From the IMG/VR virus record IMGVR_UViG_3300028735_000003, positions 186,001 to 250,000 of that record: a DNA stretch of 64,000 bases. One strand, 5' to 3'. Position numbers and translations under genes: made by a program. Below, piece by piece: positions 8,311 to 36,668 of this stretch (within the stretch, counting starts at the first letter, position 1; each line of letters starts with the position of its first letter). The notes under the pieces were generated by a model. That model was not told the origin of the DNA, ran no database searches, and saw only the letters and a list, made by a program, of their open reading frames with translations.

Positions 8311-11115
8311 TTATAACTGTCCAAGGCTGACTTTAATGTAGATAAAGTTTACTGGGTAAGTTGGCTGAACCCTCACTGTTACGTTCCATTGTGTTGGATT
8401 TGCAGAATCTTTCTGCACTGACAAATCCTTGTATGCAGTGATTAGACCTTGTGAAACCAATGCGTTCAATAAAATGACAGCACGAGTATTCAAAACTGCT
8501 TGTGTTTCCTGATTCTCTGGTAAACCAATGAATGGTGCAAAACCTGCGCGCAGTACCTTTGCTACTCTATCTCTTATGAATACTATAGAAATTTCTTGCT
8601 CTTCAGGATATCCACTTTGAGATGTTGTAATACCCCAAACCACCCTTCCTCCACCGGCTACTGGTTGTAATGTACATACACCGGCTTGTGCCAATTGTTC
8701 AAGTACCAATGAAGAAAATTGCTTATTTCTAAGAATTGTGAAACCTGTCAAAGTCTTGTTTGTCAATGGATTTTCAAGTCTTACATCAGCAGATTCATAA
8801 CCTGCTGCGGCTGCTGCTAAGTAAAATCCGTCAACCAATACGTTGTCTGTTCCAGCTTGAACAACAATTTGATCTGGATAGAAATATACACATCTAAATG
8901 TATTTCCAAATGCATCTGCTACAGAATAATTTGCCAAGTCTTCAATGTTTCCTGACAATACTTCAGTAACGCTGTCTCCTTGAATTCCTTCAAGCACACC
9001 GATATCTTCAACTGCTGCCAACTTTGCTCCAGTAAGATTTTCTGGTGTTAATCCAGAAATTGCTCCGCAGAATAAAACCCTTTCTTTCTTATTTTTAATA
9101 TTACTCATGCTCTTGCAATGTGCTAAAGCATTTTGAAAGATTACCGATATGGTTTGTTTTGGCAATGGGACAACTATATCACATTCTACTGCCTCTAATG
9201 ATTTAAAAGCATTTATCCATCCAGCATCGTAGAAAGATGCATCTTTTTCGTTAATTACAGTGACTCTTAAACGATATCCATTAGGAACAACATTATGATT
9301 CAATACAATATATGAACTTTGATCTGCAAGATCCAAAACTTCATATCTCATATTAGATTCACTGACTACTGCCTTCTTAATTGTTACTTGATTAGAGCCT
9401 ACTGCAATTATATCATATAAACCGTCTTGATTGTTAGCAGAACCATTGATATGTAATCTATAATTTAATTCAATATCAGGAACATTGCTAAAATCTATTG
9501 TAGCGCTATTTAATGTGCCGGTTGCTGTTCCTGCAATTTTTACTAATACACCGTCAGTTCCAGAATAACCATCTAATGGTAATCCACTTGAATTACTGAT
9601 TAATTCAAAAGTAATTGGTGTTTCATTAGTAAAGTCAGAAAAGTATGGGGCTGACAAAGTATGGAATCCCTGTGGGTCATCACTCGTCTTAACTGTTAAT
9701 TTACCATTAGATACTCCAGTAACTTCAAAATAACCGATGTTTGCAGAGTTGATTGCATCGATAAGGCTCAAAGTTTTACCAACATAACTAGAATCAAACC
9801 TAATTGATGAACTAAAAACGCCTCTATTATTAACTGCGGGGTCTCTACCAATATATCCGTCAAAACCTGATGCTAATGTTTCATATCCTAACTTAACTGT
9901 ATAATAATATGAATATCCACCAGGAGCAGGAATATCATCAAAAATGAATTCATTTGTTGTTGGATATCCTGGAGTATCTAGCAAATAATAATCTAATTTA
10001 TTTGGAAGAATCTGTTGTTCTACATTAGTTGTATTATTTGTCACGAAGAAATGGATATTGGAATTGAAATCCAATGTGACACCTGCTGGTAATGGAAAGA
10101 TAAAGTCATCTGGATTAGTAGATGTCGCGGTAACTGAGTCCTCTAAAATATAAGATGTTCTTCTTGGCATTGCTGGAGCGGTTTGTACCGTCAAAATAGC
10201 TGGCGCAGCATTTGCAAATGCTAATTGACACCCTAAACTCAAATTATTATCGATACTTGGGAAACCATGACGAACAGCTACATCTCCTAAGCCTTGCAAT
10301 AATACAGGGTCATTTAGAGTTGCCGTTGGAATATAAGTTGCTGTTAAAGAGTCGTTACGAACTAAAGCCCCGCTATCAACGATAACTGTGAAAGCATCTC
10401 CCTCTCTGAATGGAGTTATTGATACGCCACCAACTTTGGTCTCATAAATTGAAAAACTTAATACACCGTTTGATACAACTTTTCCATTGGCGGTCCAAAT
10501 TATAGGATTACCATTTGCGTCTAACTTTGTTCCAGATACAGATCCAAATGCTATAAACTTTGCGGTATTTTGTATCGGGGCATTTAAGGCGTCTCGAACA
10601 ACCGACACACATCTAATAGACCAGGTTTCTGGAGGCGCATTAGCATCAACTAAGGTCAAAGAGGTAAGATAACCATCACCAACATTTGTCGTAAGTGGTA
10701 CATAATATGCACCACCCTGATCAACTAAATGTGCTCTTTGCAATTCAATTTGACCAGAATTAATATCAATTCTATAATCATACTTATTGCTGAATGGTTT
10801 AGAATCAATTAAGGCTTCTAAACCAACAAGTGGTATACCATTTTTAAACAATTGTGTTCTATTAGAAATTACTGGGTAGTCTCCCAATTTGAAATGTCTA
10901 CCATCTGCACCAGTTGTTGATGTATAGGTTGGGTTTAATCCGTCATTACCACCACCTATTGCTTGAGAAACTAAAGTTTCTTCAGCAGCACCTTCACCCA
11001 TTATAGCCGCGATTCTGGAGCCTCCAGGAATTGAAACCCCGCGAGATTGTGTAACTACATCAGTAAAAACACCTGGTATTGCTGTTGATGCGCCTGGAAT
11101 GTTAGCGTTAGCCAT
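8311..11115 (-). CDS. Contractile tail sheath protein (934 aa)
   Basis: N-terminal PGVF; C-terminal LTNK, GITT, EISIVFIRD and VQPTYPVNFIYIK sheath motifs. Confidence 0.9.
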   Translation of the reverse strand: MANANIPGASTAIPGVFTDVVTQSRGVSIPGGSRIAAIMGEGAAEETLVSQAIGGGNDGLNPTYTSTTGADGRHFKLGDYPVISNRTQLFKNGIPLVGLEALIDSKPFSNKYDYRIDINSGQIELQRAHLVDQGGAYYVPLTTNVGDGYLTSLTLVDANAPPETWSIRCVSVVRDALNAPIQNTAKFIAFGSVSGTKLDANGNPIIWTANGKVVSNGVLSFSIYETKVGGVSITPFREGDAFTVIVDSGALVRNDSLTATYIPTATLNDPVLLQGLGDVAVRHGFPSIDNNLSLGCQLAFANAAPAILTVQTAPAMPRRTSYILEDSVTATSTNPDDFIFPLPAGVTLDFNSNIHFFVTNNTTNVEQQILPNKLDYYLLDTPGYPTTNEFIFDDIPAPGGYSYYYTVKLGYETLASGFDGYIGRDPAVNNRGVFSSSIRFDSSYVGKTLSLIDAINSANIGYFEVTGVSNGKLTVKTSDDPQGFHTLSAPYFSDFTNETPITFELISNSSGLPLDGYSGTDGVLVKIAGTATGTLNSATIDFSNVPDIELNYRLHINGSANNQDGLYDIIAVGSNQVTIKKAVVSESNMRYEVLDLADQSSYIVLNHNVVPNGYRLRVTVINEKDASFYDAGWINAFKSLEAVECDIVVPLPKQTISVIFQNALAHCKSMSNIKNKKERVLFCGAISGLTPENLTGAKLAAVEDIGVLEGIQGDSVTEVLSGNIEDLANYSVADAFGNTFRCVYFYPDQIVVQAGTDNVLVDGFYLAAAAAGYESADVRLENPLTNKTLTGFTILRNKQFSSLVLEQLAQAGVCTLQPVAGGGRVVWGITTSQSGYPEEQEISIVFIRDRVAKVLRAGFAPFIGLPENQETQAVLNTRAVILLNALVSQGLITAYKDLSVQKDSANPTQWNVTVRVQPTYPVNFIYIKVSLGQL

Positions 11116-11245
11116 ATTTGAATCCTTATCACTCAGTTATGTAGCTTGTATCATTAAAATGTATTAATATTACTATTCCTGGTGATATATTAATATATTT
11201 TATTGTCTTGCCCGTCTTTTCATTCGCTACTTAGAACCTGTTAAT

Positions 11246-12070
11246 TTACAAGTTTAGTAGCATGTCTAACAGATTTACTTCCGTATTGATAGTAATATTT
11301 GGTGAAACTGGTGTATTCGGGTTTGACAAATCTTCAAAAGATGCACTAAAAAATATTGCATCTATAATGTTTCCTATAGGTATTTCTCTTCTCCACTCTG
11401 TCCTTATATCTAATGTGATAGTTTGCCTAAACAATTTGTCATTTCTATCATCGATCTCAGATGGTGCCCCAATACTTGGGGGCTTCACAATTATACCAAT
11501 ATCATAAAGAGAATCTACGGTTATTTCTGCAAAACACAAACCAACTAATTCGACCAAATCATCTCTAGATCTTAAACTCCTAGTTATAACATCTATAGCT
11601 ATTTGACCCTCCCAAACTCCAGCCGTAATAAAATATGCTGGATTATGTACTATAGTCTTGTTACCATATCCATCTTCAAAAACAATATCTTCATACTGTA
11701 CCGCCCCCTTTTCTCTATTTATAGAAATAGGAATATACTTGCTACCGCCACTTTTTACTAAAATAGCCGGATAATAAACACCATCGTGTCTATAATTTTC
11801 TCCAATAAATAGCCTAGTACTTAATAAACCATTAATAGATGCTGTAGAGCCATACGCTGTAATTGGCAAATCTGCCCCAGGCGGCATATTTGTATGATCC
11901 GTTGTATTTGGAAACCCCCACTGATCTTTAGAGTAATGGTAAAAATCACTGTGTGAAAAAAAATCACGCAATGTAGATAAAATTATCTCTTTCGGATATA
12001 CAATCATAGAACTTTGAACAAAATTGTGCAAAGAATATAAATTGTCTCTACTAAAATTATTAGTGCCCAT
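11246..12070 (-). CDS. Putative tail terminator/completion protein
   Basis: Directly upstream of sheath; YPAILVK...IDVITRS...RDDLVE pattern of tail terminators. Confidence 0.55.
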   Translation of the reverse strand: MGTNNFSRDNLYSLHNFVQSSMIVYPKEIILSTLRDFFSHSDFYHYSKDQWGFPNTTDHTNMPPGADLPITAYGSTASINGLLSTRLFIGENYRHDGVYYPAILVKSGGSKYIPISINREKGAVQYEDIVFEDGYGNKTIVHNPAYFITAGVWEGQIAIDVITRSLRSRDDLVELVGLCFAEITVDSLYDIGIIVKPPSIGAPSEIDDRNDKLFRQTITLDIRTEWRREIPIGNIIDAIFFSASFEDLSNPNTPVSPNITINTEVNLLDMLLNL

Positions 12071-12657: not shown

Positions 12658-15600
12658 TTACCACACGTATTTAACTTGTAGTTGATCTATAATGGTTTTC
12701 ATAGTGCTGGAGTCATCTTGTGTCATTACTGTAATATCCGCATAAATATAGCCAATATCACCAGATTGTTTGTTAGTATACAGTAACAAGAATGGGTCGC
12801 TAATTGATAGTGTGCGCTGTCCACCGCCAGATGGTACAATATAAGTGTCTGTTACTTCTATTGGTGCTGAGAAAGGTGCAGGAATATATGTCTGAGCAGT
12901 TAGGATTATACTATAAGCACCAGACGATGAAGGCGGGTCTACGGGCGTTACATCAACACTAAGTTTTCTAATTTTAACGTTTTCGGGTATCATTGTAGAC
13001 AAATCAAGGTGGCTGCTAATATAATACATGGCGCCGCCCGTTATAGAACCGTTATATGTTAATACTAACCTATTTGGTATAGTATGTAGCTTTTCAATTG
13101 ATATTCCTGTTGGGAATCCAATGAAATTTCTATGAGCACCACTTGGGAACGGTAGAAATGAAGACCAAGTAAATTGTCCATAATTGAATGAAAAGTTTCT
13201 TGTAACTGTTTGGTTGATATTTCTCTCTATAATCCACGAAAAAGTATATGGTAAAGCAAATACATCATCAATAGTGTTTGATTTATCTACAAATACAGAA
13301 TCTAAGTAGTTTTCAGTTATTATTCCAGATGAACCAATTAGTCCTAACCATTCTGGGGTTTCACCATTAACCCACCCAATATAGCTTCCAATTCCAGCAC
13401 CATTTCTATAAAGCTGATTATTTGTGCAGGTATTTACCTTGCCACCAATTCCAATCATTGGATATGCATGAATTCCATCTTTATATCCATCAACTCCTTT
13501 AATAATATTATTAGTAATTATGGAAGAAGTTCTACAATATATTCCACCATTGTACAAATCATAATATAAAGTAGTCATATCTGTTGCAGATATCCATCCA
13601 GCATCTATTGTATTCCCAGAAATTAGACAGTTGCCACCATTTCCAAAATTATAAGCAGAGTTATATTTATTGCCAATTACTGTGATGGCATAATTTATCT
13701 TTCCCTCAATATCAGACGCAGATTCACCAAATTGTTCCAAGAATGTTGAATCATATCCAGTTAAATTATTTCCGATAATCTTTAGGAAATTATTTGTCTC
13801 AAACGATAGCCCGGTATGAATCCAATTTGCATGGTTATTACTAATTGTAACTAGTCCACTAACATAAACAGACATATTTGTAGTTATACCGGAAATCTTC
13901 TTAGTAGGAGAAAAATATTTCCCCTTATAATCCATTGATGCAATATAATGACATGTATTACCGTCTATTAGAAGATTTGGACCCTTGTCATTTAATTCAT
14001 TAGTAAATGGAGCAATGTTTAAATACTTGCTCCCCAAACTTGTCCAATAGCCTATAACCCCGCAAATATTGTTAGATATATGGCAATTCTCAGCTTGTAA
14101 ACCTGGAAGTTGCATATATCCGTCTCCATCAGTCTTAGAGGTAACTATAATGGACTGATTCTTGTTACACACATTATCAGTAATTGATATGCCTCTTAAC
14201 ATAGGCTGTGGCAAATAATAACTAGTAACAGCAGGAGCAATATTTACAATTGCTATTACTGCTCTTATAGAGTCTATAGAAGCAGGTATATTTGTATCAT
14301 TAAACCTACAATTATTAATTTTAACATTTTCCAAAACAGATTGATTTGTTGTTAAATCAAAATTGATAAAACTGAATCTATCTGCACTCTCGGAAGTAGG
14401 ACTGTAATTAAATATAGTGTTTTCTATTGTTATATCCTGTAAATTTGTTGCGACAGAAGCTTGAATATATCCAAAACTACCATCTACAACGTTTCCTGCA
14501 TTTACAAAATTAGCAGTATTGTATGATAATATACCTGATGTATATGATGATGGATTGAATGTAGACGTGATTTTACAGTTACTGACTATAGAATCATCAG
14601 ACGTGTCGCTATACTTAATAAGCCTATTGAAATTACCAGTAAATTGAGAATTAATTATTCTGGTCTTAGTAGTAGCGTCAAACGTGAATACATCGCCTGG
14701 ATAATAAACTCCCGCTGTTGGGGCATATACAGCGTTCAATGAACTATTCAAGAATTGAAAATCCGAACAGTTAGTAAAATTAAATACAGTTCCGCCACTA
14801 TCTGTTTGTGTTGGATATATTGCGGTTATAGTACTATCCTTAAATATTACAGATGTTGCGGCATTTAAAAATATCATAGTATTATCTGTACGTGCTGTTG
14901 TTGGAGCAAAAGTAATATTACAATTCTCGAACTTTAAATGGCTACATGCATAATCAAACATGACATAATCTGTGAAATATAGATTTATGTTTTGGAAAGT
15001 TACGTTTGATCCAATAGTAATAGTTCCAGTAAATTCTATACTCGCATCGCCATTACCGTCTATTACTATTGTTCCTCGATCATTTGTGCCTAGCCTCAAA
15101 TCTTCAGACACTATAGGTCCATGAGGCTCTGTTCCAGTTACCATTGCTCCTTTTATAACTACCTGACCATTAAATGAGCTATTATAACTTAACCAGTTAA
15201 ATATGGCAGATACGTTCTTAAAGTTGCTCTGACCATCTCCAGCATTATATCTTAATGGCAGATTTGCATCTACATCTGTAACATATTTCCTTACATCATA
15301 CATTGTCAGCGTAGAAGTAGCTACGCCGCCAACAACTTCAACTTTACTGTGAACAACATATACTAATGTAAGATCTTTTCTGTTATTTACGATATCAGAG
15401 AAGTACTCTGCATCTAAATTATATTTTTGTAGATTTAATGGGTTATATGCTTTGAAAATTCTATCTTCGTTTGGTGTCCCATTGATGGCATCATAATCTA
15501 ATAAAGGAATTGGCTGATACTCGCCCCTATCATTAACACATAACGCCCAGTTTATACCAACCGTATCCCTACCAAAATATTCTTGAATTTTTGGAATTGC

Positions 15601-18567
15601 TACCGTTTCATGATTCTTGTATATTATTTTACCACCTACTAATGCAACGCCACCCTTCATATATATTTGGTTATCATTTGGGTTGGTTCCAACAAGAACG
15701 GTCTGAAGATCAAATCCTTTGATTATTCCATTTTGATGCAATAGCTTATCTGGAAGAGAAATATAATTCAATGCTGAGGTGCTAAATTCTTTTTCACTTA
15801 CATTTCCAAATTGTCTTTCATCACGAAGCTGTGTTAGTTTCCCAGTTACACTATTATGTTGACATGTGGCAATCAACATAATCTCATCATCTGATGCCAA
15901 CGATGGAAATAGTTGAAAATCAATTAGCTGATCAGTAATTGGTAACAAAAACTCAGTATTTGTATCAAACAAAATATCAATATAATCAATATTCGTTTCA
16001 TCATAGAATCTAGTGACTTCACCAATTCGGCCATGTATTGTTGGACCATAATTAGTATAATTACTTCCATCATAAGATACTAAGTATCCAGAGAAATCTC
16101 CAGTTTCTTCGAATGAAAGAATTCTTAATGAAATCTTGGTTACTGATCCAAATTGATATCCTCTTAATTTGGGAGATATTCTAATTATTTCAAGTTTAGC
16201 TAATTCAGAAGTAGATCTTATAGTAACGCCATTTACAGTAGTTCCGCCAGAAATATGTATTCTTCCGCGTTCATGTGTAAACGTATTAGAATTCTCATCA
16301 ATGTAGACCTCAAAATGTCTTTTGAATGATGAATACACATCATTATCTGTTGCTGTCTCATTATTAAACGATACAGAATCAGAATTAAAGTATAACGCAA
16401 ATTGTCCACTATTAGATGATGATGCTGGAGAAAATCCTGCGGCATGAATTGAGTCATAAACAGTTATATCTGTATATACATCTGGAGAGCATCCAAATGA
16501 AATAGATTCTATGATATATCTTCCATAATCTCTAATTGTTCCAGATCCTGCAGATTGAATTACTAATGTTTTACCTTCTTTAAGTTTTGTATGAGAAAGA
16601 TCTACTCCATCAATTCTATAAGTGGTTGCAACTCTAATGCCAGGGGTTGGCACTCTTCCAATTATAGTTGCTAGCCAATAACTATCACCATACCCATCTA
16701 ATAATTGCCCTTCTTCTAATGATAGTTTATCTTTTTCTGTTCCATTAACATAATAATTAGCCCTTGTTACCGGAATAAAGATCTTAGTTGCAATTTGAGC
16801 TGCCTCAGTAGAACCATAAGAAGATTTATATGGTGGGCTAGAAATAGCGGCTCTTGTGCCACCAAATCCTAATGGATCTGGCGGCACCAATGGAGAAGCC
16901 GCAAACATCCCAATTACATTCTTATTGAATGCAATATTTGTTTCTGTTTCATCATAATTTCCATTGTTATCTACTATGGCATCAAGAATAGAAAATGCTG
17001 CATTATTATAGCAGTCTGTCATCATTATACCAAATTCACCTTGGTATGAAAATGCCATAAATCTATAGTTATACCCTGCTTTTCTAAATTGAGCATTTGT
17101 AGCATCTACTACAGATTCCAGAGTATATAGCCCTGGTGTAGCCCCAGCATTTCCTGTTACGTCAATTGGCGGCAATATTACATATCCATCTTCTGGATGT
17201 CCAGTTGGATACAACGCTATATATAGCAAATAATGATCACTATCAAGCAGATCAGGATCAAATCCAATACCCAAAACCATAGCATTACGTGGGCTACCAA
17301 CTATTAAACTTGGCATAATGGATGTCGCCATATTATGATTCACTAATGATGTAGCCAACACACCAAACTTGTTATTATTAAATAGTGGCTTATCAATTCT
17401 AGCAGTTGCATATCCTTCTGGAGAATAATACAAATTCTTTCCTGCAATTCTGATAATGTATTTGCTTGGACTACCAGAAATGAATTTCTTCTCTTTAACT
17501 AAGAATGGAACCTCAACAGCACCATGTCCATTATATGCCTTATATGTAACTCTAATTATATCTCCTGGTTTTACTAAAGAGAATTGAGAATCAAACTTAA
17601 AAGATGCAGTAACTCCAACATCAGGAAAAAATTCTATAATATCGTCACCATAATTGATATTATCAACTGGCGAACTGCTGCTTCCCGTATTTCCTAATAA
17701 ATATGTTTTAACTGAAGTTGTTGGAACAATAGATTGACCAACCGTTTGTGATCCTAACTTAGCAGATCTAGATACTTTAGAAATCCCGTTAGAATATAAA
17801 TTTTGAATTCTTGTTCCATATAAAAATATGCTGGAATCATCTATAAATTGAGCAAAAGTTTGTAAATCTGTTGTGGTTTCTGGTATTACCGCAAATCTAT
17901 TTGTGTTTAGAAAAATACCAGAAGCTGTATGAGCATAATCAGCAGGATAAGAAGCTCCGCTATTAGTAATAACTGTACCGGAAGTAACATGATAACCGTC
18001 TGCAAATTGATGATCTAATAGCTCTGTATTCATACCAGATATTAACTGATATGAATCGGAATTATCACGATATAAACGGTACTTGTTCTTTAGATATTTA
18101 TTTGGATCAGCATTTACATCAATATGAGTCAAGTTATGGCGATAAATAGCGCCACCTATATGTGGTTCTAGTTTCATACCACTGATAGAAACCCAACCAG
18201 CAATAACATCTATGTGATTCGCAGAATCTCGAATGTAATTAAATAAATCTGACGTTCTATAATCTAAAAGAAGTTTCGATTCTGGAATATTTGCATTATC
18301 TGCAATTTGATTGTTTGTTATTGGTAGAGTAACTAATCCCAAACCAGTAAGAGCAGACGGATTTATAGCTCCACTAGGCAATAGAGATATACCTAATCTT
18401 TTTGCTATAGAACCTGCCGTTCCTGATGCGCCTAACCCTATCTCTGTTTCGATGTTAAATATTGCATCGCGAGCAGCATTTATGGCTTCTCCACCAATTT
18501 CAGTTAAATTGTTATTTACAAATGGTAGGGTTGTGTCATCATCAAAGTTTGAAGGAAAATTACTCAT
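12658..18567 (-). CDS. Very large virion structural protein with C-terminal right-handed beta-helix (spike/fibre-like)
   Basis: ~1970 aa; N-terminal SNFPSNFDD; C-terminal third has Asn/Ile-rich parallel beta-helix repeats (ISNN, IIGNN, ITNNII). Probable ATG 18567. Confidence 0.6.
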   Translation of the reverse strand: MSNFPSNFDDDTTLPFVNNNLTEIGGEAINAARDAIFNIETEIGLGASGTAGSIAKRLGISLLPSGAINPSALTGLGLVTLPITNNQIADNANIPESKLLLDYRTSDLFNYIRDSANHIDVIAGWVSISGMKLEPHIGGAIYRHNLTHIDVNADPNKYLKNKYRLYRDNSDSYQLISGMNTELLDHQFADGYHVTSGTVITNSGASYPADYAHTASGIFLNTNRFAVIPETTTDLQTFAQFIDDSSIFLYGTRIQNLYSNGISKVSRSAKLGSQTVGQSIVPTTSVKTYLLGNTGSSSSPVDNINYGDDIIEFFPDVGVTASFKFDSQFSLVKPGDIIRVTYKAYNGHGAVEVPFLVKEKKFISGSPSKYIIRIAGKNLYYSPEGYATARIDKPLFNNNKFGVLATSLVNHNMATSIMPSLIVGSPRNAMVLGIGFDPDLLDSDHYLLYIALYPTGHPEDGYVILPPIDVTGNAGATPGLYTLESVVDATNAQFRKAGYNYRFMAFSYQGEFGIMMTDCYNNAAFSILDAIVDNNGNYDETETNIAFNKNVIGMFAASPLVPPDPLGFGGTRAAISSPPYKSSYGSTEAAQIATKIFIPVTRANYYVNGTEKDKLSLEEGQLLDGYGDSYWLATIIGRVPTPGIRVATTYRIDGVDLSHTKLKEGKTLVIQSAGSGTIRDYGRYIIESISFGCSPDVYTDITVYDSIHAAGFSPASSSNSGQFALYFNSDSVSFNNETATDNDVYSSFKRHFEVYIDENSNTFTHERGRIHISGGTTVNGVTIRSTSELAKLEIIRISPKLRGYQFGSVTKISLRILSFEETGDFSGYLVSYDGSNYTNYGPTIHGRIGEVTRFYDETNIDYIDILFDTNTEFLLPITDQLIDFQLFPSLASDDEIMLIATCQHNSVTGKLTQLRDERQFGNVSEKEFSTSALNYISLPDKLLHQNGIIKGFDLQTVLVGTNPNDNQIYMKGGVALVGGKIIYKNHETVAIPKIQEYFGRDTVGINWALCVNDRGEYQPIPLLDYDAINGTPNEDRIFKAYNPLNLQKYNLDAEYFSDIVNNRKDLTLVYVVHSKVEVVGGVATSTLTMYDVRKYVTDVDANLPLRYNAGDGQSNFKNVSAIFNWLSYNSSFNGQVVIKGAMVTGTEPHGPIVSEDLRLGTNDRGTIVIDGNGDASIEFTGTITIGSNVTFQNINLYFTDYVMFDYACSHLKFENCNITFAPTTARTDNTMIFLNAATSVIFKDSTITAIYPTQTDSGGTVFNFTNCSDFQFLNSSLNAVYAPTAGVYYPGDVFTFDATTKTRIINSQFTGNFNRLIKYSDTSDDSIVSNCKITSTFNPSSYTSGILSYNTANFVNAGNVVDGSFGYIQASVATNLQDITIENTIFNYSPTSESADRFSFINFDLTTNQSVLENVKINNCRFNDTNIPASIDSIRAVIAIVNIAPAVTSYYLPQPMLRGISITDNVCNKNQSIIVTSKTDGDGYMQLPGLQAENCHISNNICGVIGYWTSLGSKYLNIAPFTNELNDKGPNLLIDGNTCHYIASMDYKGKYFSPTKKISGITTNMSVYVSGLVTISNNHANWIHTGLSFETNNFLKIIGNNLTGYDSTFLEQFGESASDIEGKINYAITVIGNKYNSAYNFGNGGNCLISGNTIDAGWISATDMTTLYYDLYNGGIYCRTSSIITNNIIKGVDGYKDGIHAYPMIGIGGKVNTCTNNQLYRNGAGIGSYIGWVNGETPEWLGLIGSSGIITENYLDSVFVDKSNTIDDVFALPYTFSWIIERNINQTVTRNFSFNYGQFTWSSFLPFPSGAHRNFIGFPTGISIEKLHTIPNRLVLTYNGSITGGAMYYISSHLDLSTMIPENVKIRKLSVDVTPVDPPSSSGAYSIILTAQTYIPAPFSAPIEVTDTYIVPSGGGQRTLSISDPFLLLYTNKQSGDIGYIYADITVMTQDDSSTMKTIIDQLQVKYVW

Positions 18568-18616
18568 ATTCCACACCGTTTATCATGGTTATTTCCATTA
18601 ATATATAACCGGAAAA

Positions 18617-20444: not shown

Positions 20445-22013
20445 TTATGGTAATATTATTTGATGTTTATGACCAACAGCTTCTAACACCTGACCATTAA
20501 CTATTGGATGGTTATGCCCCTGAACAACATTTGTGGTTTGATTGATTTGATTTACAGATATGATTTTCTCACTAATTACTATCTTATGAGTATGGGGGGC
20601 TATTCCTGTAGTAAAGCCAATGCTTGTACTGAGCTGAGAAGGGAACATACTTGAATCACTAAAAATACGTATTTGATATGCTGGATCAAACTTTCTAATT
20701 CTTTGAGCTTTAATCTTCTGACCTCCCTGCAAACCCAACACAGTATTATTTCTATTTACTGATAAGACCTCATATCTATATTCTTCATTTCCATCCATAT
20801 CATATAAAACAAGAATATCTCTATCCTTAATAGTAGGAACAGTAAGTGTCCAGAAATCAACGTGGAATTCAGATTCTAGACCTGCTTCTGTCATCTTAAC
20901 ATCTTCATCTGCTGGGCTCTGTCTAACCATAATTCTTCCATCCGAACGTCTTGGATTAAAATATTGTTCATAACCAAAAACGAACTTTGTTCCATAGCAT
21001 AGTGGACATCTATCATCAGGATATTCACTAGAAGGGAGATAACATGAACAAGTTATTCCCGTTCTTACTCTCTTAATCAAAACTGCTGGTTTTCCGGTAA
21101 CGCTCAATCCAATTTCTTGTCTTTGGTTATTGCTATCTTGTAATGAAAATCCTCTTAACATTTGAAAATTGCCATATTGATCTATGCAACCTTGTTCACC
21201 GCCTATATAACTTCCTACACATGTGCCATTAATTATCTGTACAGGATCTGTTCTATGCCATCCAGCATAATCATAAGCAGGGAAATCCACATTATATTGA
21301 TCGCTGGCAGATAAATCAATAGTTAATAAATCTTTAGTTACTTGATGATATCCATCTGCATTAGTCCGCTGAAACTGCGGATACTCAAAACGGCATTGAC
21401 ATTGAAAAACTTGATCCCATCTACGATCTTCACCAATTACAAAGAAATTTACAGTAGGATCCCATGTATTATAACCATCATATCCATCTATATTATGAAT
21501 TCTAGCATTAGTGTTTTTGTATCCTCTTAGATATCCATCTAAATTATTCAATATTGAATCTACTGAAGCATACTCAATAAGTTCAATTCCAATTTTTATT
21601 ATTCCAGATGGAGGAAAACCAAATGTGTCCAATAATGGAATTGTTAAATCAGTAGCAGTAATATTATCTCTCAACAAACTAGACGGTACAATTCTTAAAT
21701 TATCATATGCAACCGGTAATGTAGACAAATCATATACTACAGGATCATATTCTATTGGTCTTACAGAAAAGAAATATAATTGTCCAGGTATCAAATCTAT
21801 GATGTTTGCTTCCAATGAATCGTCGATCGAGATGTATTTTATACCCTCTGTAAATACTGTTTCTTTGACTGTTGAATAGTATATGTTATACGCAATTCTA
21901 TTACCTGGAGAAGTGGTATACGCTTGATGCCACTTCAAATTAATAGTATATCCATCACCCAATGAAGATGTTAAATATAAACCTGATCGTACTGGATTAG
22001 GATAAAATACCAT
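20445..22013 (-). CDS. Putative neck/head-closure protein with N-terminal FN3-like domain, Cys cluster and C-terminal His-rich motif
   Basis: LKW...YNIYYS...DLIPGQLYFFSVR (FN3); TCSC...RCPLCYGT; HTH/HNH/HKH at C-terminus; located between adaptor and tail genes. Confidence 0.55.
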   Translation of the reverse strand: MVFYPNPVRSGLYLTSSLGDGYTINLKWHQAYTTSPGNRIAYNIYYSTVKETVFTEGIKYISIDDSLEANIIDLIPGQLYFFSVRPIEYDPVVYDLSTLPVAYDNLRIVPSSLLRDNITATDLTIPLLDTFGFPPSGIIKIGIELIEYASVDSILNNLDGYLRGYKNTNARIHNIDGYDGYNTWDPTVNFFVIGEDRRWDQVFQCQCRFEYPQFQRTNADGYHQVTKDLLTIDLSASDQYNVDFPAYDYAGWHRTDPVQIINGTCVGSYIGGEQGCIDQYGNFQMLRGFSLQDSNNQRQEIGLSVTGKPAVLIKRVRTGITCSCYLPSSEYPDDRCPLCYGTKFVFGYEQYFNPRRSDGRIMVRQSPADEDVKMTEAGLESEFHVDFWTLTVPTIKDRDILVLYDMDGNEEYRYEVLSVNRNNTVLGLQGGQKIKAQRIRKFDPAYQIRIFSDSSMFPSQLSTSIGFTTGIAPHTHKIVISEKIISVNQINQTTNVVQGHNHPIVNGQVLEAVGHKHQIILP

Positions 22014-24287: not shown

Positions 24288-24647
24288 TTAAAATGAGGTT
24301 GCTGAGTACAAACCAAAAGGTGAAGAAACCTGTATTAGATATGGACTTACATTTAAATTACCATATAAATCACGATAATGTATATCTACAAAATAAGTTC
24401 CAACCGAAGACGCACCCGTAGGTAGAATAAATTTATAATAGTAAATACCAGTGTCATATTTTAACATAGGTTGAGGAAAATATCCGTCAGATGTTAAATT
24501 TGGATAAATTATTCTATGAATAACTGGAAGATTATATCCATCAATAGAATAACCATCATAATAACCATCATAATAATTATTATTTGTATCTAAAGTGGTT
24601 AAAAATAAAGTTACAGTTTGTCCAGGAGAATAAGATAAGGTCAACAT
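24288..24647 (-). CDS. Small Ig-like virion protein with DGY repeats
   Basis: TGIYYYKF.LP...GTYFVDI Ig-like pattern, similar to N-terminus of the adjacent gene; YYDGYYDGYSIDGY. Confidence 0.5.
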   Translation of the reverse strand: MLTLSYSPGQTVTLFLTTLDTNNNYYDGYYDGYSIDGYNLPVIHRIIYPNLTSDGYFPQPMLKYDTGIYYYKFILPTGASSVGTYFVDIHYRDLYGNLNVSPYLIQVSSPFGLYSATSF

Positions 24648-26700: not shown

Positions 26701-27018
26701 TCATCTGATACCCCAAGCCTCTATTCGCACGGTACCACTTCCTCTAAACCAGATTTTAGAAATAACCCTATTTTCAAACACTAGGCTCTTACTTGAAAGT
26801 GTACTTGTCATATCACCATGCACAGTAATTCCATTAAATGAATATTCTAGTGGTCCACCGCTTTCCAATTGAAAAGTAACAGTATAAGTAGAAAATGGTA
26901 TCAGAATTTGACAATTAGTTGGGAAATATCCATCAGTTATATTAACACTCAATTTATTAAAATAATTGAAGTCTTTACCATAATCTATTGCTGTATAAGG
27001 GCTTGAAAAATCAGACAT
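26701..27018 (-). CDS. Small beta-rich putative virion protein
   Basis: 105 aa, LEYSFNG.TVHG...SKIWFRG; one DGY. Confidence 0.5.
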   Translation of the reverse strand: MSDFSSPYTAIDYGKDFNYFNKLSVNITDGYFPTNCQILIPFSTYTVTFQLESGGPLEYSFNGITVHGDMTSTLSSKSLVFENRVISKIWFRGSGTVRIEAWGIR

Positions 27019-27935: not shown

Positions 27936-27982
27936 ATGTTCTCACTTTTTATAATCTGTTTCATAATATAATTTATTGCCCA

Positions 27983-29065
27983 TTATTCATTTTCTCTAAT
28001 AAAATAGAATGTTCCAGTGGAAAATGTTCCATTAAATGGAGTATCATGTTGTAAATATATTCTTAGCTCCATTCCATAACTACTTGATAAATCAGTGGTT
28101 GTTTGAAAATCCCAAGAAAATACGCTAATTTGTCTTGGTGATCCTCTCCAACCTGTACCACCTAACGCAGGTATTATTGGATAAGCTTTATTAGAATCAT
28201 TTATAAAATCATATATTGTCTTATATTCATCTGGCGCTGCGACCATAACTTTATTTGGCAAATCATTCGGATTATATGCCCAGACTTCATATACCAATGT
28301 ATCAGTCATTTCAACATCATCAGAAAATTGGCTTTCTGCTCCTTTTAATTTCCAAACTTCGCCGTTATCTGGACTTATAACGAATAGTGAGCCATCTTCA
28401 TAGTAATATGATACTAAAGGATCTTTACCGACAGGGGCGCTTTCCGATAAAGTAATCGTCCCTGTACGATAATTCACTACAAAATCACCTCCAGTCCCAT
28501 AATGTGGATCTTGTTCAGTTAAAGTATATCCGTCCAATGTTACAGCAACTCTCATTGCAGATAAACTGTTTTCTCCAGTCAATTTTCCATGATATACGTC
28601 TATGATTACATCATGAAATAACTTCCACTCTTTACGATATTCGTCTAATACTGTTGGTGTTTCATTTACTACTGGTTTTGCATTATACCACCATGTGGTT
28701 TTATCGCACCAATTCATACTGATCATATTTCTCTTTAGTCCAGATGGAGGTAGAGCTTTTACATTTAATGGTGTAGTTGTATTAATAGGTAATGACACAT
28801 CTGTTGATGTAATTCTTACAGGTAATGTTTCTTCTGGTAATGGTTCACCATTATGTGCAGCAACTAAACCATCTAATACAGCATGTTCTCCGGCAGATAA
28901 ATCAGCCTTAAATAATATATTACAAGCATCGTCGACCGTATTAATAGAGTCTAACGCTATTGTAATGCTATCATTATATATGATTTCTCGATATAATCTA
29001 CTTGGATCTACCTTATGATTAGGAAAATCAATACTTATTGAATAAGTATACGTTACTTTAGCCAT
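27983..29065 (-). CDS. Putative virion structural protein
   Basis: DFVVNYRTGTITLS...VSYYY beta motif typical of tail/baseplate proteins; likely ATG 29065 coupled to the fibre gene stop. Confidence 0.5.
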   Translation of the reverse strand: MAKVTYTYSISIDFPNHKVDPSRLYREIIYNDSITIALDSINTVDDACNILFKADLSAGEHAVLDGLVAAHNGEPLPEETLPVRITSTDVSLPINTTTPLNVKALPPSGLKRNMISMNWCDKTTWWYNAKPVVNETPTVLDEYRKEWKLFHDVIIDVYHGKLTGENSLSAMRVAVTLDGYTLTEQDPHYGTGGDFVVNYRTGTITLSESAPVGKDPLVSYYYEDGSLFVISPDNGEVWKLKGAESQFSDDVEMTDTLVYEVWAYNPNDLPNKVMVAAPDEYKTIYDFINDSNKAYPIIPALGGTGWRGSPRQISVFSWDFQTTTDLSSSYGMELRIYLQHDTPFNGTFSTGTFYFIRENE

Positions 29066-31392
29066 TATGAAACCCTCCAAATTTCCAAATCACAACTTGT
29101 TGTTGCTGCTGTAGTTCCTGCGCTACCTGATGCAAACTGCATAGCTATGGTATGTGTTGCCTCTGAATCGAATTTAACATAAACAAAGCCGCTCTCATTC
29201 ATCCTTTGAGTCGTTGCAGCATCTTCTGGTTCTTCCCGATGAAAATAAATCTCAGTTGTATTATCCAAAAATAACCTGCCTAAATAATTAGTTGTAATAC
29301 TAGTGTAATACCAATTATATCTAAACCCTATTCTATATATTCCTGCTGGAATGATCGATGTAGCCAATATTAAATATGTAGTCCATGAAGTTGAAGTTGT
29401 AGTCATTGTAGTAGAGGCTGTAATTTGTTGCCACTGTGTTCCGAAAACAGTTCCAGGAATTGTAATTGTAGCTACTCCGCTGCCAGCATTTGTTGCAGTT
29501 ACACCATCGCCAACAAAGTTTAATGTGCTATGTGGCGTAGATGTTACCGGAACGCCTTCATCGTATACTGTAATCGTACTACCAGATCCAGTATCTCCTT
29601 TTTGACCGTTCATCCTAAGAACAGTAAATGTAGCATTTGCCTGCATAGTCCCGGATGTAGCAATTTGATTTTGTACAGTTACATAATCGCCGGCAGAAAG
29701 GGCTGCAACTGCGCTAATAGAAATAATATCAGATTCATTAGTATATGTAATTGATCCTTGTGTTGAACCCGATATAACTGTACTATTGTTCTTCAAAACA
29801 CGACCTTCGAATTTACCAGTTGATGTTGGCTGGACTTCAAACTGATACATTACCATATATGTGCCGGTTTCAACTATATTAATTCTATCAGAATTTGATG
29901 AATCATGTACAATTACTGAAGGATTTGTTTCAACATCTACTGTATCGAATCGTATATTATTCCAAGAAGTAGGCATATTAAGAGTCGTTGTCCTTCTCTT
30001 TTGGCAAACCGCTAATGGCGCCCCCTTAAGATTAACACTTTGTACTTTCTTTTTTACTCCCGCCGCTGCAGAATCTTCAATTAATATCAAGTCCGCATCA
30101 GATAACGATGTTTTTTCAGTAAAAGTAGAAAAATCATTGGCTCCACGAGTTAGTCCAGCATGTACGTGGTCTGCTCTAGCAAGACTTGTTGATGAACCTT
30201 CTGTATTTGTTGTTCCAATAGAAGAAACTATAGCTGTTGAAATATCATGCTTATGATCTGCCCTTGCAGCAGTATTTGCAACACCAACTACTGACGCAGA
30301 TTTAGTGACATCCGCTGGCATAGTGCTTGCTAATGGCGTATTAGTTGCCCCTACCGCAATTCCATCTAATTTAGACCCATCAACTGAAACATCTCTTCCG
30401 TCTACTGTTTGTGTAGAATTAAATACAATATTGCCATTTGCATCAACAGCCATTAGTACTGCACCAGAAGAACTTTCCCAATTTTGTAAGTTAGCAGTTT
30501 GTGCTATAATTCCTCTTACACCTAATGAAACTGCATTAGTTTGTTGAGCAGGAATTATTACGCCATATGCTCCAGCAGCACCAATATTTGATGGAGAATA
30601 CTCAACTGTAGATTGTTTATTTCCAACTAATTGCAAACCATACCATGATGTTATAACTGATTGTCCACCACTAACTGCTTGAATAGATAAATCAGAGCCT
30701 TTAACATAAGTATTAGATGCTAATTTACCTGCTGCACTTACATCTCCACCAGCAGATATTGTTAATCTTGCCAAATTGTTTGTAATAATTGCAAGATCAT
30801 AGTTTGTTGTATTTCCAATTGTTCTATTGGTTACTGCTGCATCGCCACAATTCGCAAAATCACCGTGTAATGTAGTCCATGCTGCATTAGTAGAACTAGT
30901 AGCAACGAGTGCTTGACCATTTGACGGAGCCGTAGCACCAGAAATACTAACTATTGTCGTTGCTGTTCTTAGTCCAGATGCTGTTCTATCATTAGATAAT
31001 CTTAAATCATTTCATTGGCAGAATGTTCCGGCTGTTGAACCGAATGCTGGCAATGAATGTCTGTGATCACTTCTTGATAATGAAGTAGAAACACCTTCCA
31101 ATGCAGTGTCTCCTGGCGCTTGAGCCCCTGCTATTGCAGTTGAGATATCATGCTTATGATCTGCTCTAGCTGCTGTTGTTCCAATGCCAACCGCTGCAGT
31201 TTCTTTAGTAACATTAGTAGGTGCTGTACTAGCCAATGGAGTATTCGTAGCTCCAATTTCAATACCATCTAATTTAGCTTTATCTGATCCTGTTAAAAAT
31301 CCAGATGCACCTGATGCTATTGCGGCGGCGTGCAACGCTCCATCAGACTGATATCCATGTGAATGTACGTGGTCTGCCCTGGCTACAGAAGA
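29065..31392 (-). pseudogene. Tail fibre-like gene (ARADHxH repeats, C1q/TNF-like domain) with in-frame TGA and disrupted 5' end; the 29065-30774 part may still be expressed
   Basis: ORFs 31012-31335 and 29065-30774 are one frame separated only by TGA at 31014-31012 (FCQ*NDLRLS). The frame continues upstream as SSVARADHVHSH to a TAG, with no in-frame ATG there. Confidence 0.65.
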
Positions 31393-33666: not shown

Positions 33667-33727
33667 TTGTGCAGCCTCGCAAAACAATATAACATCATAT
33701 TAATAGATTGTCCTGGTTCACATGCAC

Positions 33728-33760: not shown

Positions 33761-33794
33761 AGAAATTACTTAGCGCACTAAGTAGTTGATATTA

Positions 33795-35869: not shown

Positions 35870-36002
35870 GGTTTCTCCTATAGGAATTATTTGCCAGTTT
35901 TACCAGCTTTATTGTTATGATTTGAATGGATGAGGGATTCCGTTTTAGGGATTTAGATTTTCATCTGTCCATTCCCTCGACAGACTTAAATTATTTAATA
36001 AA

Positions 36003-36668
36003 TTAGTACTGTGGATTGAAGTGGAATACTGCGAAAGCGTAGTTTCTTGTTCCAAGTGCTGAAGCCAAGTAGTTTGGAGTATTTACCAAAGATCCATTGG
36101 TTTCGAAGCTTACGAAGTGACCAACTACCACTGTGTTACCTGCTGCTGCGGTACTTCCAACTGGAGTCAAACGACCACCAACTGTTGAGCTGGCTGGAAC
36201 GAATGTTAGTGCAGTACCTGTGTTAAGAGAGGCATTTGAAGAAACTAGACCGTCTGCTGCTTGGTCACATGCGCCGTCTAGAGATACTGCATAAAGTCCT
36301 GGCTTGTCCCATAAAGTTACCTTGCCAGAGCTTGTTGCCGTGTGTGGTCCTAGTTTTGTACCACCAGTTGATACTTGACCAACAGTTCCACCGACTACTG
36401 ATCCGAACAAAGTTCCGTATCCTATAATACCTTCGTCTGCTAACATCAACGGACGATCAGTGGTTGCAACGTTACGAGTAACAACAACTCTCTTCAATGA
36501 ATTAACATATCCATCAAATACGTCAAAAGCTGCCTTGTCTGTTGCTGCTGTCGCCAAAATTGACTTGAAAGTAACGACCTCGCCACCCATAAGGGTTAAT
36601 ACTTCCGTATCAAGTCCATCGAATTGACCTAATGGTTGAACACCTGGTTGTAAAAGTTTTAGAGCCAT
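36003..36668 (-). CDS. Putative capsid decoration/cement protein
   Basis: Immediately upstream of capsid; T.SSGKVTLW..PG motif; similar to 44094-44783. Confidence 0.6.
   Translation of the reverse strand: MALKLLQPGVQPLGQFDGLDTEVLTLMGGEVVTFKSILATAATDKAAFDVFDGYVNSLKRVVVTRNVATTDRPLMLADEGIIGYGTLFGSVVGGTVGQVSTGGTKLGPHTATSSGKVTLWDKPGLYAVSLDGACDQAADGLVSSNASLNTGTALTFVPASSTVGGRLTPVGSTAAAGNTVVVGHFVSFETNGSLVNTPNYLASALGTRNYAFAVFHFNPQY

Follow-up and report, generated by a model that had tools for sequence, protein, structure and literature searches.

A recurrent Asp-Gly-Tyr motif on virion proteins of a giant-phage clade, a possible mark for sugar attachment

A three-residue motif, Asp-Gly-Tyr (DGY), is about ten times too frequent in the tail, neck and decoration proteins of a whole clade of giant phages, is rare in their other proteins, and lies beside a conserved glycosyltransferase gene cluster. 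The motif may therefore mark tyrosines for sugar attachment on the virion surface, a function that is inferred from sequence alone.

Results

DGY is enriched in nine proteins of the window

The window analyzed here is a 64,000-nucleotide stretch of the IMG/VR record IMGVR_UViG_3300028735_000003. It contains 22 in-frame DGY, distributed among nine ORFs exactly as a previous sequence-only reading had listed them (Table 1), and the observation made in that reading is thus confirmed. The nine proteins total 4811 aa, from whose composition 1.3 DGY are expected, and the other 38 ORFs of at least 80 aa have none. Across all 47 ORFs, 22 DGY are observed against 3.24 expected (Poisson p = 6.8e-12), making DGY the most enriched of all 8000 tripeptides; the next is PQP at 3e-7. 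None of 2000 within-protein shuffles reached this value, the best p obtained being 3.8e-7, and a first-order Markov model expects 4.8 DGY for the region. One correction to the earlier account is required, as the motif is not confined to positions 8311–36668: tail proteins encoded just outside the left end of the window also carry it. Of the protein names proposed in that account, only the sheath, the Ig-like fold of the 119-aa protein and the major capsid protein were confirmed, such that most of the others (including terminator, adaptor and FN3 neck protein) remain provisional.

Table 1. DGY-bearing ORFs of the window (all on the minus strand), with DGY counts in homologs given as observed/expected
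Coordinates	Protein	DGY in window (codon positions)	Homologs	Further observations
8311..11115	Tail sheath, 934 aa	3 (10669-10677, 9853-9861, 9565-9573)	51 homologs, 89/7.6	PHROG and Pfam sheath hits cover the conserved C-terminal region (residues 631-932), and all three DGY are N-terminal to it; site 419 is DGY in 46 of 51 homologs; at sites 147 and 515 DGY alternates with VGT/LGT and VGG/TGG
11246..12070	274-aa protein of unknown fold (provisional "terminator")	1 (11666-11674)	56 homologs	DGY at residue 133 kept in 51 of 56 homologs; a profile search found no PDB relative
12658..18576	1972-aa protein	5 (17992-18000, 17182-17190, 16690-16698, 14116-14124, 13483-13491)	26 homologs, 121/10.7	DGY spread over 27 distinct alignment columns; beta-helix or tailspike identity only a weak lead
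20445..22013	522-aa fibre-like protein with Cys pairs and C-terminal HxH repeats	5, including DGYDGY (21948-21956, 21531-21539, 21480-21488, 21471-21479, 21348-21356)	18 homologs, 73/2.8	16 distinct columns; the homolog in locus L014 has an inserted sheath-like domain holding 7 of its 10 DGY; AF2 model poor (pLDDT 48), with DGY20 between two strands of the better-modelled N-terminal domain
23377..24276	299-aa protein (provisional "adaptor")	1 (23938-23946)	13 homologs	DGY at residue 111 invariant in 13 of 13 homologs; no PDB relative
24288..24647	119-aa protein, predicted Ig-like beta-sandwich	4 (24561-24569, 24549-24557, 24534-24542, 24480-24488)	32/0.8	AF2 pLDDT 88.7; DGY 27, 31 and 36 in the long loop 18-41, DGY 54 in loop 48-61; weak Foldseek matches to Ig, Rib and macroglobulin domains; in homologs the loop expands as DGYY(A)DGYY... 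or lacks DGY altogether
26701..27018	105-aa protein	1 (26926-26934)	16 homologs, 15/0.5	
27983..29080	365-aa protein	1 (28526-28534)	3 homologs only, 5/0.3	
36003..36668	221-aa Gly-rich protein	1 (36507-36515)	59 homologs, 77/2.5	Directly upstream of the capsid gene, the position of the decoration gene in phage G; gene order matches phage G gp26/gp27, but no sequence similarity to gp26 was detected

The signal is at the protein level and is chemically specific

The codons of the motif vary, as had been claimed, and the 467 DGY in ORFs of the clade use codons at background frequencies. All 22 Tyr codons in the window are TAT, but TAT accounts for about 87% of Tyr codons in the clade. The DNA pattern GAYGGNTAY occurs 22 times in frame, 3 times in other frames of the coding strand and 2 times on the other strand, and the enrichment holds in genomes from 29 to 45% GC, consistent with selection on the peptide rather than on the DNA.

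In the window region, 22 of 64 DG dipeptides are followed by Y, whereas DGF occurs 2 times, DGW 0 times, NGY and EGY 1 time each, and the other orderings of D, G and Y 2–5 times, none of these being enriched. Among sheath representatives thinned to 50% identity, DGY is observed 89 times against 12.2 expected (7.3×), compared with 1.9× for DGF and 1.3× for NGY; in these representatives both the conserved C-terminal region and the extra domains are enriched, which counts against the sequon reading discussed below. The segments flanking the sites are not homologous, and no shared domain surrounds them.

The distribution among protein families is conserved across the clade

The same partition is observed in about 300 related giant-phage loci. 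Sheath, fibre-like, Ig-like, baseplate and decoration families carry DGY at 10–25 times expectation, and the motif also occurs in a membrane-like protein of the baseplate region. Tube-like, hub-like, capsid and packaging families, in contrast, carry almost none: 0 observed against 2.1 expected for the tube-like family, 0 against 3.8 for a 284-aa family, 0 against 5.0 for the capsid, and about 1 for a 1666-aa family (mean 0.02 against 0.26 expected per homolog, 61 homologs). The motif is probably depleted in head and packaging proteins. In 19 families around the terminase gene, DGY occupies 3 distinct sites against 15.3 expected, the 15th lowest of 4677 tripeptides, although this statistic is inflated by shared ancestry and reaches only about the 0.3rd percentile; DGF has 22 sites and NGY 15 in the same proteins.

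Two distal tail proteins encoded outside the window, of 2387 and 1347 aa, served as an out-of-sample set and carry 6 and at least 3 DGY against 0.63 and 0.21 expected, respectively.

DGY sites turn over in variable loops

When each alignment column is counted once, DGY occupies 86 distinct columns against 27.8 expected. The motif has been gained at equivalent loops in a fibre-borne copy of a sheath domain and in distant sheaths, and expands in tandem in the loop of the Ig-like protein; such repeated gain resembles the behavior of glycosylation sequons. DGY columns lie near indels more often than other columns (76% against 59%, p = 0.002). Where Tyr is lost, it is replaced by V, D, N, T, H or F with no preference for F, which argues against a packing role.

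A glycosyltransferase cassette follows the tail genes

The sequence-only reading had suggested looking elsewhere in the genome for modifying enzymes, and this check gave a positive result. A cassette comprising a GT4, a GT2, a 349-aa ORF of unknown function, a second GT2 and an RmlB-like (dTDP-glucose 4,6-dehydratase-like) gene starts about 0.9 kb after the last tail gene, on the same strand. The GT4 gene was found in 39 related loci, and at least this gene sits at that position in every related locus retrieved; in most of the 39 loci the other four genes follow it. In each of the roughly 30 loci with a full 10 kb upstream of the GT4 gene, that stretch holds 8–16 DGY against 0.5–1.1 expected, and the most distant genomes (49% GT4 identity) hold 15 against 0.95. 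Four loci lack both GT2 genes yet keep DGY-rich tail proteins, so that at most the GT4, the 349-aa ORF and the dehydratase could be essential. This association rests on loci without a negative control from a related clade lacking both motif and cassette, as the only DGY-free relative (L048) is a 21-kb contig of unknown cassette status. No known tyrosine-specific glycosyltransferase family was recognized, and no oligosaccharyltransferase was seen in the roughly 120 kb examined.

Discussion

The results are best explained by DGY being a short linear recognition motif under selection in loops, presumably exposed, of tail, neck, baseplate, fibre and capsid-decoration proteins in a clade of 340–480 kb phages distantly related to Bacillus phage G, with the Asp carboxylate and the Tyr hydroxyl as its functional groups. 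The most likely mechanism, held tentatively, is that DGY acts as a sequon, such that a phage-encoded cytoplasmic glycosyltransferase system, for which the cassette is the candidate, attaches a glycan, probably one containing a deoxyhexose, to the Tyr. The analysis itself establishes the enrichment of the motif, its specificity, its partition among families across the clade, the loop context and turnover of its sites, and the presence and synteny of the cassette. That the tyrosines are modified at all, that Tyr is the acceptor, that the cassette acts on virion proteins, and that DGY is what the enzyme recognizes are inferences.

The earlier interpretation, that DGY is an exposed-loop tag for posttranslational modification or docking, is partly supported, and every indirect test that was run is consistent with it. 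The notion that the motif is confined to outer virion proteins rests mostly on provisional protein identities. Glycosyltransferases are common in giant phages and may serve modification of DNA or of the host surface instead. Many DGY sites are conserved over long distances, as structural residues would be, and about a quarter of the sites are DGYG(N), which resembles the ordinary D-x-Y-G-N-P hairpin of bacterial Ig-like domains. Tail proteins of T4 also show a mild excess of DGY (7 against 2.4 expected), so part of the signal may be a general structural preference.

These last observations favor the strongest alternative, in which DGY is an intrinsic loop element with no trans-acting factor. 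In this view, the motif would form an Asx-type turn followed by Tyr, and would either stabilize fast-evolving beta-sandwich or fibre decorations or itself contact a metal ion or a ligand such as a host or matrix glycan (through Asp hydrogen bonds and Tyr stacking), giving weak multivalent stickiness to the outside of the virion in a microbial mat. The residue at −1 is often hydrophobic or Ser/Thr, sites sit between strands, several sites are near-invariant, the Tyr-, Gly- and Asp-rich expanded loop of the Ig-like protein resembles a binding loop, and the sample is a mat or hot-spring community. However, Asn-Gly, the classic type I′ turn, is not enriched, and Phe and Trp do not substitute for Tyr. 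The tube-like and 1666-aa families have essentially no DGY over 60 or more homologs each, and a purely structural or adhesive role does not predict depletion in head and packaging proteins. A contiguous three-residue motif rarely makes a binding site in unrelated folds, and the outgroup sheath of L048 folds without any DGY. We consider this alternative possible but doubtful.

A docking or sorting tag read by a nonenzymatic partner, such as a repeated decoration or fibre protein, an assembly chaperone or an assembly compartment, would recruit or coat tail and neck proteins and exclude head proteins. It would share the same linear-motif signature of order specificity, many structural contexts, gain and loss, several copies per protein and possible avoidance in other proteins. 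This reading is unlikely, as no candidate reader protein was identified, motif numbers vary widely between close relatives (2 to 10 in one family), which fits poorly with stoichiometric docking, and the adjacent cassette offers a more direct partner. An artefact of composition, of repeats or homologous domains counted several times, or of a nucleotide-level signal such as a DNA motif, codon bias or slippage is largely refuted by the controls above, despite the two tandem cases (DGYDGY and the DGYY repeats of the 119-aa protein) and the uniform TAT codons.

In mycobacteriophages (Freeman et al. 2023, as cited in PMC12619734), phage-encoded glycosyltransferase genes likewise sit next to the virion structural genes, and glycans on the particle surface are the outcome proposed here as well. 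Those glycans are on the C-termini of the capsid and tail-tube subunits, whereas here the capsid and the tube-like protein lack the motif and the candidate sites are internal DGY loops of the sheath, fibre-like, Ig-like and decoration proteins, with Tyr as the putative acceptor. The O-glycosylation motif D-(S/T)-(A/I/L/V/M/T) reported for Bacteroidetes (Fletcher et al. 2009; Coyne et al. 2013) is also a tripeptide that begins with Asp, contains a hydroxyl acceptor and recurs in many unrelated proteins; that system reportedly acts on exported proteins outside the cytoplasm and uses Ser or Thr, whereas the proteins here are cytoplasmic virion components, the hydroxyl residue is Tyr at position 3, and Gly is obligatory.

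Tyrosine O-glycosylation of S-layer proteins in Paenibacillus, Thermoanaerobacter and Thermoanaerobacterium (PMC2943079) shows that bacterial Tyr-linked glycans exist, with rhamnose-containing cores, and the cassette here includes a gene for a dTDP-glucose 4,6-dehydratase-like enzyme, which catalyzes the first step toward dTDP-6-deoxyhexoses. S-layer glycans are transferred outside the membrane by an oligosaccharyltransferase from a lipid carrier. The gain and loss of N-x-S/T sequons on envelope glycoproteins of animal viruses (glycan shields; mentioned in PMC12014285) similarly involves a short motif that accumulates and turns over in exposed variable loops of virion surface proteins, but those viruses use the host secretory pathway and Asn, whereas this is a phage with cytoplasmic assembly. 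Ig-like decoration domains such as T4 Hoc, which reportedly adhere weakly to glycans (Barr et al. 2013), are comparable to the 119-aa protein with its variable, Tyr-rich loop, and other carriers of the motif appear to be surface decorations, although DGY is not tied to one fold.

If DGY does act as a sequon, the result would be a sugar coat on the outer surface of the particle, and proteins that must not be modified (tube, hub, capsid shell, portal, terminase and internal head proteins) would be kept free of the motif.

Genomic setting

The source contig, IMGVR_UViG_3300028735_000003 of IMG/VR, is 353,765 bp long, with the window at positions 186001–250000, and its DNA is found in microbial-mat and hot-spring metagenome runs. 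All long ORFs of the window lie on the minus strand. The genes that could be recognized include a tail sheath, a major capsid protein split into two pieces, a head-maturation protease domain at the N terminus of a long ORF, and a terminase that contains an intein. The capsid protein is 51.5% identical to that of Bacillus phage G, the nearest cultured relative, whereas searches of GenBank phages returned no close relative by DNA or for the 522-aa protein, and for the sheath returned only one distant sheath. The capsid protein is 93–100% identical across 60 relatives, whereas the sheath ranges from 43 to 100% and most tail proteins from 25 to 70%; the capsid shell is evolving unusually slowly.

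Coordinates of features in the window and in related or flanking sequences (L numbers are our labels for retrieved sequences)
Feature	Location	Strand
Tail sheath	window 8311-11115	-
522-aa fibre-like protein	window 20445-22013	-
Patatin-like phospholipase	window 27066-27935	-
569-aa ORF	window 29065-30774	-
107-aa ORF	window 31012-31335	-
714-aa endonuclease and methyltransferase-like ORF	window 31543-33687	
Major capsid protein, 239-aa C-terminal piece	window 33795-34514	-
LAGLIDADG/HNH-type endonuclease ORF between the capsid pieces	window 34604-35434	-
Major capsid protein, 95-aa N-terminal piece	window 35582-35869	-
ORF with N-terminal head-maturation protease domain	window 46851-50543	
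Tyrosine or dual-specificity phosphatase-like protein	window 51605-52357	-
Short ORF with Cas12f1-like TNB domain	window 56707-57246	-
1018-aa ORF with LAGLIDADG_3 segment	window 57321-60377	
Large terminase with intein, 1333 aa, continuing beyond the window end	window 60453-63971; L205:7247-11248	-
Short ORF with Cas12f1-like TNB domain	L205:4328-5071	
Short ORF with Cas12f1-like TNB domain	L292:21629-22096	
TubZ-like gene with intein, left of the window	L294:12064-14868	
IS605 OrfB	L294:16270-17061	
742-aa DGY-carrying protein, left of the window	L082:18341-20566	
522-aa family protein with inserted sheath-like domain, first relative	L014:10001-12007	
522-aa family protein with inserted sheath-like domain, second relative	L015:10001-11962	
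Phage T4 structural genes used as control	L203 (phage T4, 75-125 kb)	

The region carries several insertions and accessory genes. Most relatives have a single 337-aa capsid ORF, so the endonuclease ORF that separates the two capsid pieces represents an intron or a homing-endonuclease insertion, which is shared by the related locus L183. The intein of the large terminase includes a LAGLIDADG endonuclease (Intein_splicing, LAGLIDADG_2), the neighboring 1018-aa ORF also has a LAGLIDADG_3 segment, and the TubZ-like gene left of the window carries an intein too. At least three short ORFs with a Cas12f1-like TNB domain (TnpB-like fragments) are scattered through the genome; one sits between the last tail gene and the glycosyltransferase cassette described below, and an IS605 OrfB lies nearby. 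The patatin-like phospholipase (Pfam 2e-30) is encoded inside the neck and tail gene block and has only 6 homologs among the related loci, so it looks like an accessory gene. The 107-aa ORF is 64% identical over 76 residues to part of the neighboring 569-aa ORF, a partial duplication that lies next to the 714-aa ORF.

DGY enrichment and its specificity

We translated 47 minus-strand ORFs, which contain 22 DGY, distributed over nine proteins exactly as the sequence-only reading states, and none in the other 38 ORFs; the observation made in that reading holds. Per-protein composition predicts 3.24 DGY in total and 1.3 for the nine carrier proteins. DGY is the most enriched of all 8000 tripeptides (p 6.8e-12), the next being PQP at 3e-7, and in 2000 within-protein shuffles the best p-value for any tripeptide was 3.8e-7. 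A first-order Markov model expects 4.8 DGY for the region.

The signal resides in the peptide. The DNA pattern GAYGGNTAY occurs 22 times in frame, 3 times in the other frames of the coding strand, and twice on the opposite strand, a specificity for frame and strand that rules out a DNA-level motif. Across the 467 DGY in ORFs of related loci, codon use matches background (TAT 89% against 87%, GAT 83% against 86%, GGA 48% against 42%), which excludes codon bias or unusual TAT use, and the pattern persists in relatives from 29 to 45% GC.

The motif is also specific in chemistry and order. In the window region, 22 of 64 DG dipeptides are followed by Y, whereas DGF occurs twice, DGW never, NGY and EGY once each, and the five other orderings of D, G, and Y occur 2–5 times. 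Segments of 45 residues on either side of the 22 sites show no significant similarity between proteins, so a shared mobile domain does not explain the count in the window.

Distribution among protein families of the clade

Searches with six virion or packaging proteins retrieved about 300 related loci from IMG/VR, many of them from contigs of 340–480 kb. The motif splits the protein families of these loci into those that carry it and those that do not. In addition to the families tabulated, the 1666-aa protein averages 0.02 DGY per homolog against 0.26 expected, over 61 homologs.

DGY in protein families, summed over homologs (families named by the size of the window ORF)
Family	DGY observed	Expected
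Sheath	89	7.6
274-aa	51	3.3
1972-aa	121	10.7
449-aa	12	1.3
522-aa	73	2.8
299-aa	18	0.8
119-aa	32	0.8
105-aa	15	0.5
221-aa	77	2.5
284-aa	0	3.8
Tube-like 234-aa	0	2.1
213-aa	0	1.0
787-aa	3	2.2
Capsid, two exons	0	5.0
460-aa	0	2.2
367-aa	0	1.7
609-aa	0	1.6

To limit the effect of shared ancestry, we counted each alignment column once. DGY then occupies 86 distinct columns against 27.8 expected, the highest ratio among well-populated tripeptides apart from MMS (15 columns), which is a likely artifact of ORF starts; DGF is at 0.88x and NGY at 0.74x. Among 96 sheath-family representatives clustered at 50% identity, DGY is observed 89 times against 12.2 expected (7.3x), compared with 1.9x for DGF and 1.3x for NGY. 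The enrichment reaches very distant sheaths of 1166–1474 aa, although the contigs that carry distant DGY-rich sheaths were too short for their gene context to be informative, and ordinary sheaths of 450–550 aa mostly have none. When the core and the extra domains of sheaths were separated by a crude envelope definition, both were enriched.

A mild excess is also seen in other phages. T4 structural genes have 7 DGY against 2.4 expected, one site each in gp7, gp8, gp12, gp18, gp27, gp28, and UvsW; a 50-kb stretch of phiKZ has 5 against 2.2; and the head region of phage G has 2 against 1.6, which is no excess. A mild general preference may therefore exist, but nothing comparable to 11–25 fold.

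Outside the carrier families, DGY may be avoided. In 825 unique ORFs around the terminase gene of 80 relatives, DGY occurs 6 times against 44.3 expected, although redundancy makes such ratios noisy, the first percentile of all tripeptides being 0.14. The column-based count, repeated on 19 families from this neighborhood, places DGY at 3 distinct sites against 15.3 expected, the 15th lowest of 4677 tripeptides (about the 0.3rd percentile, with a variance inflated by shared ancestry), whereas DGF has 22 sites and NGY 15 in the same proteins. A 10-kb stretch of replication genes has 1 DGY against 0.65 expected. The terminase-neighborhood counts suggest, but do not prove, selection against DGY outside the carrier families.

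Site turnover and structural context

Some sites are nearly invariant: residue 133 of the 274-aa protein is DGY in 51 of 56 homologs, residue 419 of the sheath in 46 of 51, residue 111 of the 299-aa protein in 13 of 13, and residue 220 of the 522-aa protein in 17 of 17. Others are specific to particular lineages. At two sheath positions DGY alternates with VGT/LGT or VGG/TGG, so that D and Y change together around a fixed Gly. In two relatives, L014 and L015, a domain homologous to sheath residues 126–247 (45–55% identity) is inserted into the fibre-like 522-aa protein, an instance of domain shuffling between the sheath and a fibre; the L014 copy has DGY at seven places where L015 and the sheath have other residues, and a distant sheath subclade has DGY at two of the same loops. 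In the 119-aa protein, one loop reads DGYY(A)DGYY..DGY in some relatives and has no DGY in others.

DGY columns lie near indels more often than other columns do (76% against 59%, odds ratio 2.1, p 0.002). Where Tyr is lost at otherwise conserved sites, it is replaced by V, D, N, T, H, or F with no preference for Phe, whereas a buried packing tyrosine would be expected to favor Phe.

The AF2 model of the 119-aa protein (pLDDT 88.7) is an all-β sandwich in which three DGY lie in the long loop 18–41 and one in loop 48–61. Foldseek matches this model to Ig, Rib, and macroglobulin domains with TM about 0.45 and E about 4e-3, and the assignment of a predicted Ig-like fold, which applies to this protein only, is weakly supported. 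The AF2 model of the 522-aa protein is poor; in its usable N-terminal domain, one DGY lies between two strands and one within a strand. The 522-aa protein has conserved Cys pairs (CxC and CxxC) and three C-terminal HxH motifs, which resemble the metal-binding motifs of T4-type fibre tips. PDB profile searches with the 274-aa and 299-aa families gave no hits, and searches of the ESM Atlas gave only weak leads for the 1972-aa protein.

Distal tail proteins and an adjacent glycosyltransferase cassette

As a test of the pattern on proteins outside the window, we walked along the source contig beyond the left end of the window, where further tail genes follow on the same strand. The 742-aa protein of the baseplate region has a long hydrophobic, membrane-like segment and many conserved cysteines, which is unusual for a tail protein, and the 1347-aa distal tail protein has a dockerin-type repeat (Pfam 1e-8).

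DGY in tail proteins encoded left of the window
Protein	DGY observed	Expected
742-aa (hydrophobic and Cys-rich)	3	0.11
559-aa	0	0.07
143-aa	0	0.01
1365-aa	1	0.21
2387-aa	6	0.63
1347-aa (first 930 aa read)	at least 3	0.21

Directly after the last of these genes come, in order, a TnpB-like fragment, a GT4 glycosyltransferase of 378 aa (Pfam Glyco_transf_4, 32 bits against a cutoff of 28.5), a GT2 of 234 aa, an ORF of 349 aa with no recognizable family and no match in the ESM Atlas, a second GT2 of 275 aa (59 and 52 bits for the two GT2), and a 323-aa enzyme that matches dTDP-glucose 4,6-dehydratase (TIGR01181, 8e-100, just below its cutoff). The TubZ-like gene with an intein and a GH25 lysozyme follow.

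Searching with the GT4 retrieved 39 related loci, many on the same contigs as the DGY-rich tail modules already collected. The GT4 gene lies in the same place relative to the tail genes, and in most loci the rest of the cassette follows it. Each of the roughly 30 loci with a full 10 kb upstream holds 8–16 DGY there against 0.5–1.1 expected, including the most distant genomes, at 49% GT4 identity, with 15 against 0.95. Four loci lack both GT2 genes but keep the GT4, the 349-aa ORF, and the dehydratase, together with DGY-rich neighbors. The candidate glycosyltransferases thus co-occur with the motif, although these loci include no clade lacking both features that could serve as a negative control, and any action of the cassette on virion proteins is inferred.

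To the right of the window, only replication genes were found. No kinase, sulfotransferase, or other glycosyltransferase was recognized in the window. The tyrosine or dual-specificity phosphatase-like protein (Y_phosphatase2, PTP-SAK), which lies among the head genes, has no close relatives in IMG/VR apart from the source contig, so it looks like an accessory gene, and a link to the motif was rejected.

Interpretation of the motif

A contiguous, order-specific tripeptide recurs in many unrelated structural contexts, requires Asp rather than Asn or Glu and Tyr rather than Phe or Trp, is gained repeatedly in variable loops, is abundant in one set of proteins and scarce in another, and sits next to a conserved putative glycosylation cassette. 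This combination is the signature expected of a linear motif read by a trans-acting factor, and glycosylation of the tyrosine hydroxyl is the most economical version, which we hold tentatively. The sequence-only reading had inferred that DGY marks exposed loops for a post-translational modification or for docking, and that interpretation is partly supported. The counts, the specificity of the motif, its distribution among families, and the position of the cassette were observed directly, whereas a covalent glycan on the acceptor residue, the exposure of the sites, and the substrate of the cassette are inferred in the absence of chemical evidence.

In its furthest form, which remains doubtful, DGY would be the sequon of a previously undescribed, phage-encoded, cytoplasmic tyrosine O-glycosylation system comprising the GT4, the 349-aa ORF, and the RmlB-like dehydratase, with or without the GT2 enzymes. 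Such a system would coat the sheath, neck, baseplate, fibres, and capsid decoration of a widespread clade of giant phages with deoxyhexose-containing glycans, while the rest of the proteome would have been purged of the motif.

The main rival, only somewhat less likely than glycosylation but doubtful in its own right, is an intrinsic loop element that stabilizes the loop or contacts a ligand directly. It is favored by the near-invariant sites, by the DGYG(N) hairpin sub-context, and by the mild excess in T4, and it is disfavored by the exclusion of Asn, Phe, and Trp, by the tube-like and 1666-aa families, which are essentially empty of the motif, and by the possible depletion elsewhere. In a purely structural type I′ or Asx-turn β-hairpin, Asn-Gly should be at least as favored as Asp-Gly, the aromatic residue should be interchangeable, and the motif should be spread over all β-rich proteins; with NGY at 0.5–1.3x, DGF at 0.9–1.9x, and DGW at 0, and with the tube-like and 1666-aa families essentially lacking the motif, the generic hairpin was rejected. 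An EF-hand-like or DxDxDG calcium loop, with acidic or amide residues at −2 and −4 and an acidic residue downstream, was likewise rejected, as the flank profile of the 467 sites shows only weak enrichment of D at −4 (1.6x) and none at −2. A nonenzymatic docking tag is possible but unlikely, and artifact explanations are essentially excluded.

Comparison with known systems

Virion glycosylation is known in mycobacteriophages, where it sits at the C termini of the capsid and tube subunits (PMC12619734, citing Freeman et al. 2023). The adjacency of glycosyltransferase genes to virion structural genes is found here as well, but the capsid exons and the tube-like 234-aa family have 0 DGY in 58–66 homologs, and the DGY sites are internal. 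Tripeptide sequons that begin with Asp are present in Bacteroidetes. Tyr-linked, rhamnose-containing glycans are known on S-layer proteins (PMC2943079); the membrane oligosaccharyltransferase that acts outside the cytoplasm in that type of modification was not found among Pfam hits for the ORFs of the window and its flanks, which covered nearly all window ORFs of at least 80 aa and the precomputed hits for the flank genes, about 120 kb in all, with about 230 kb of the genome lying outside the search. A host-enzyme-dependent methylation of a phage tail protein has also been reported (PMC13445384). Literature searches returned no description of a DGY motif in phages and no sequences surrounding the Tyr-glycosylated S-layer sites. 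None of these systems combines a Tyr-containing tripeptide with cytoplasmic phage virion proteins, and it is in this combination that a DGY sequon would be new.

Implications

If the motif turns out to be structural or adhesive, a proteome split into families that favor and families that avoid one tripeptide would still be an unusual and easily testable evolutionary signal. If DGY is a glycosylation sequon, this would be the first sequence-defined modification code for phage particles, and the first tyrosine-directed one, and it would also offer a compact tag-and-enzyme pair for site-specific glycosylation. The substrates could then be read directly from genomes in a clade found in many metagenomes, and the finding would bear on how giant phages move through biofilm matrices, evade recognition, or bind their hosts.
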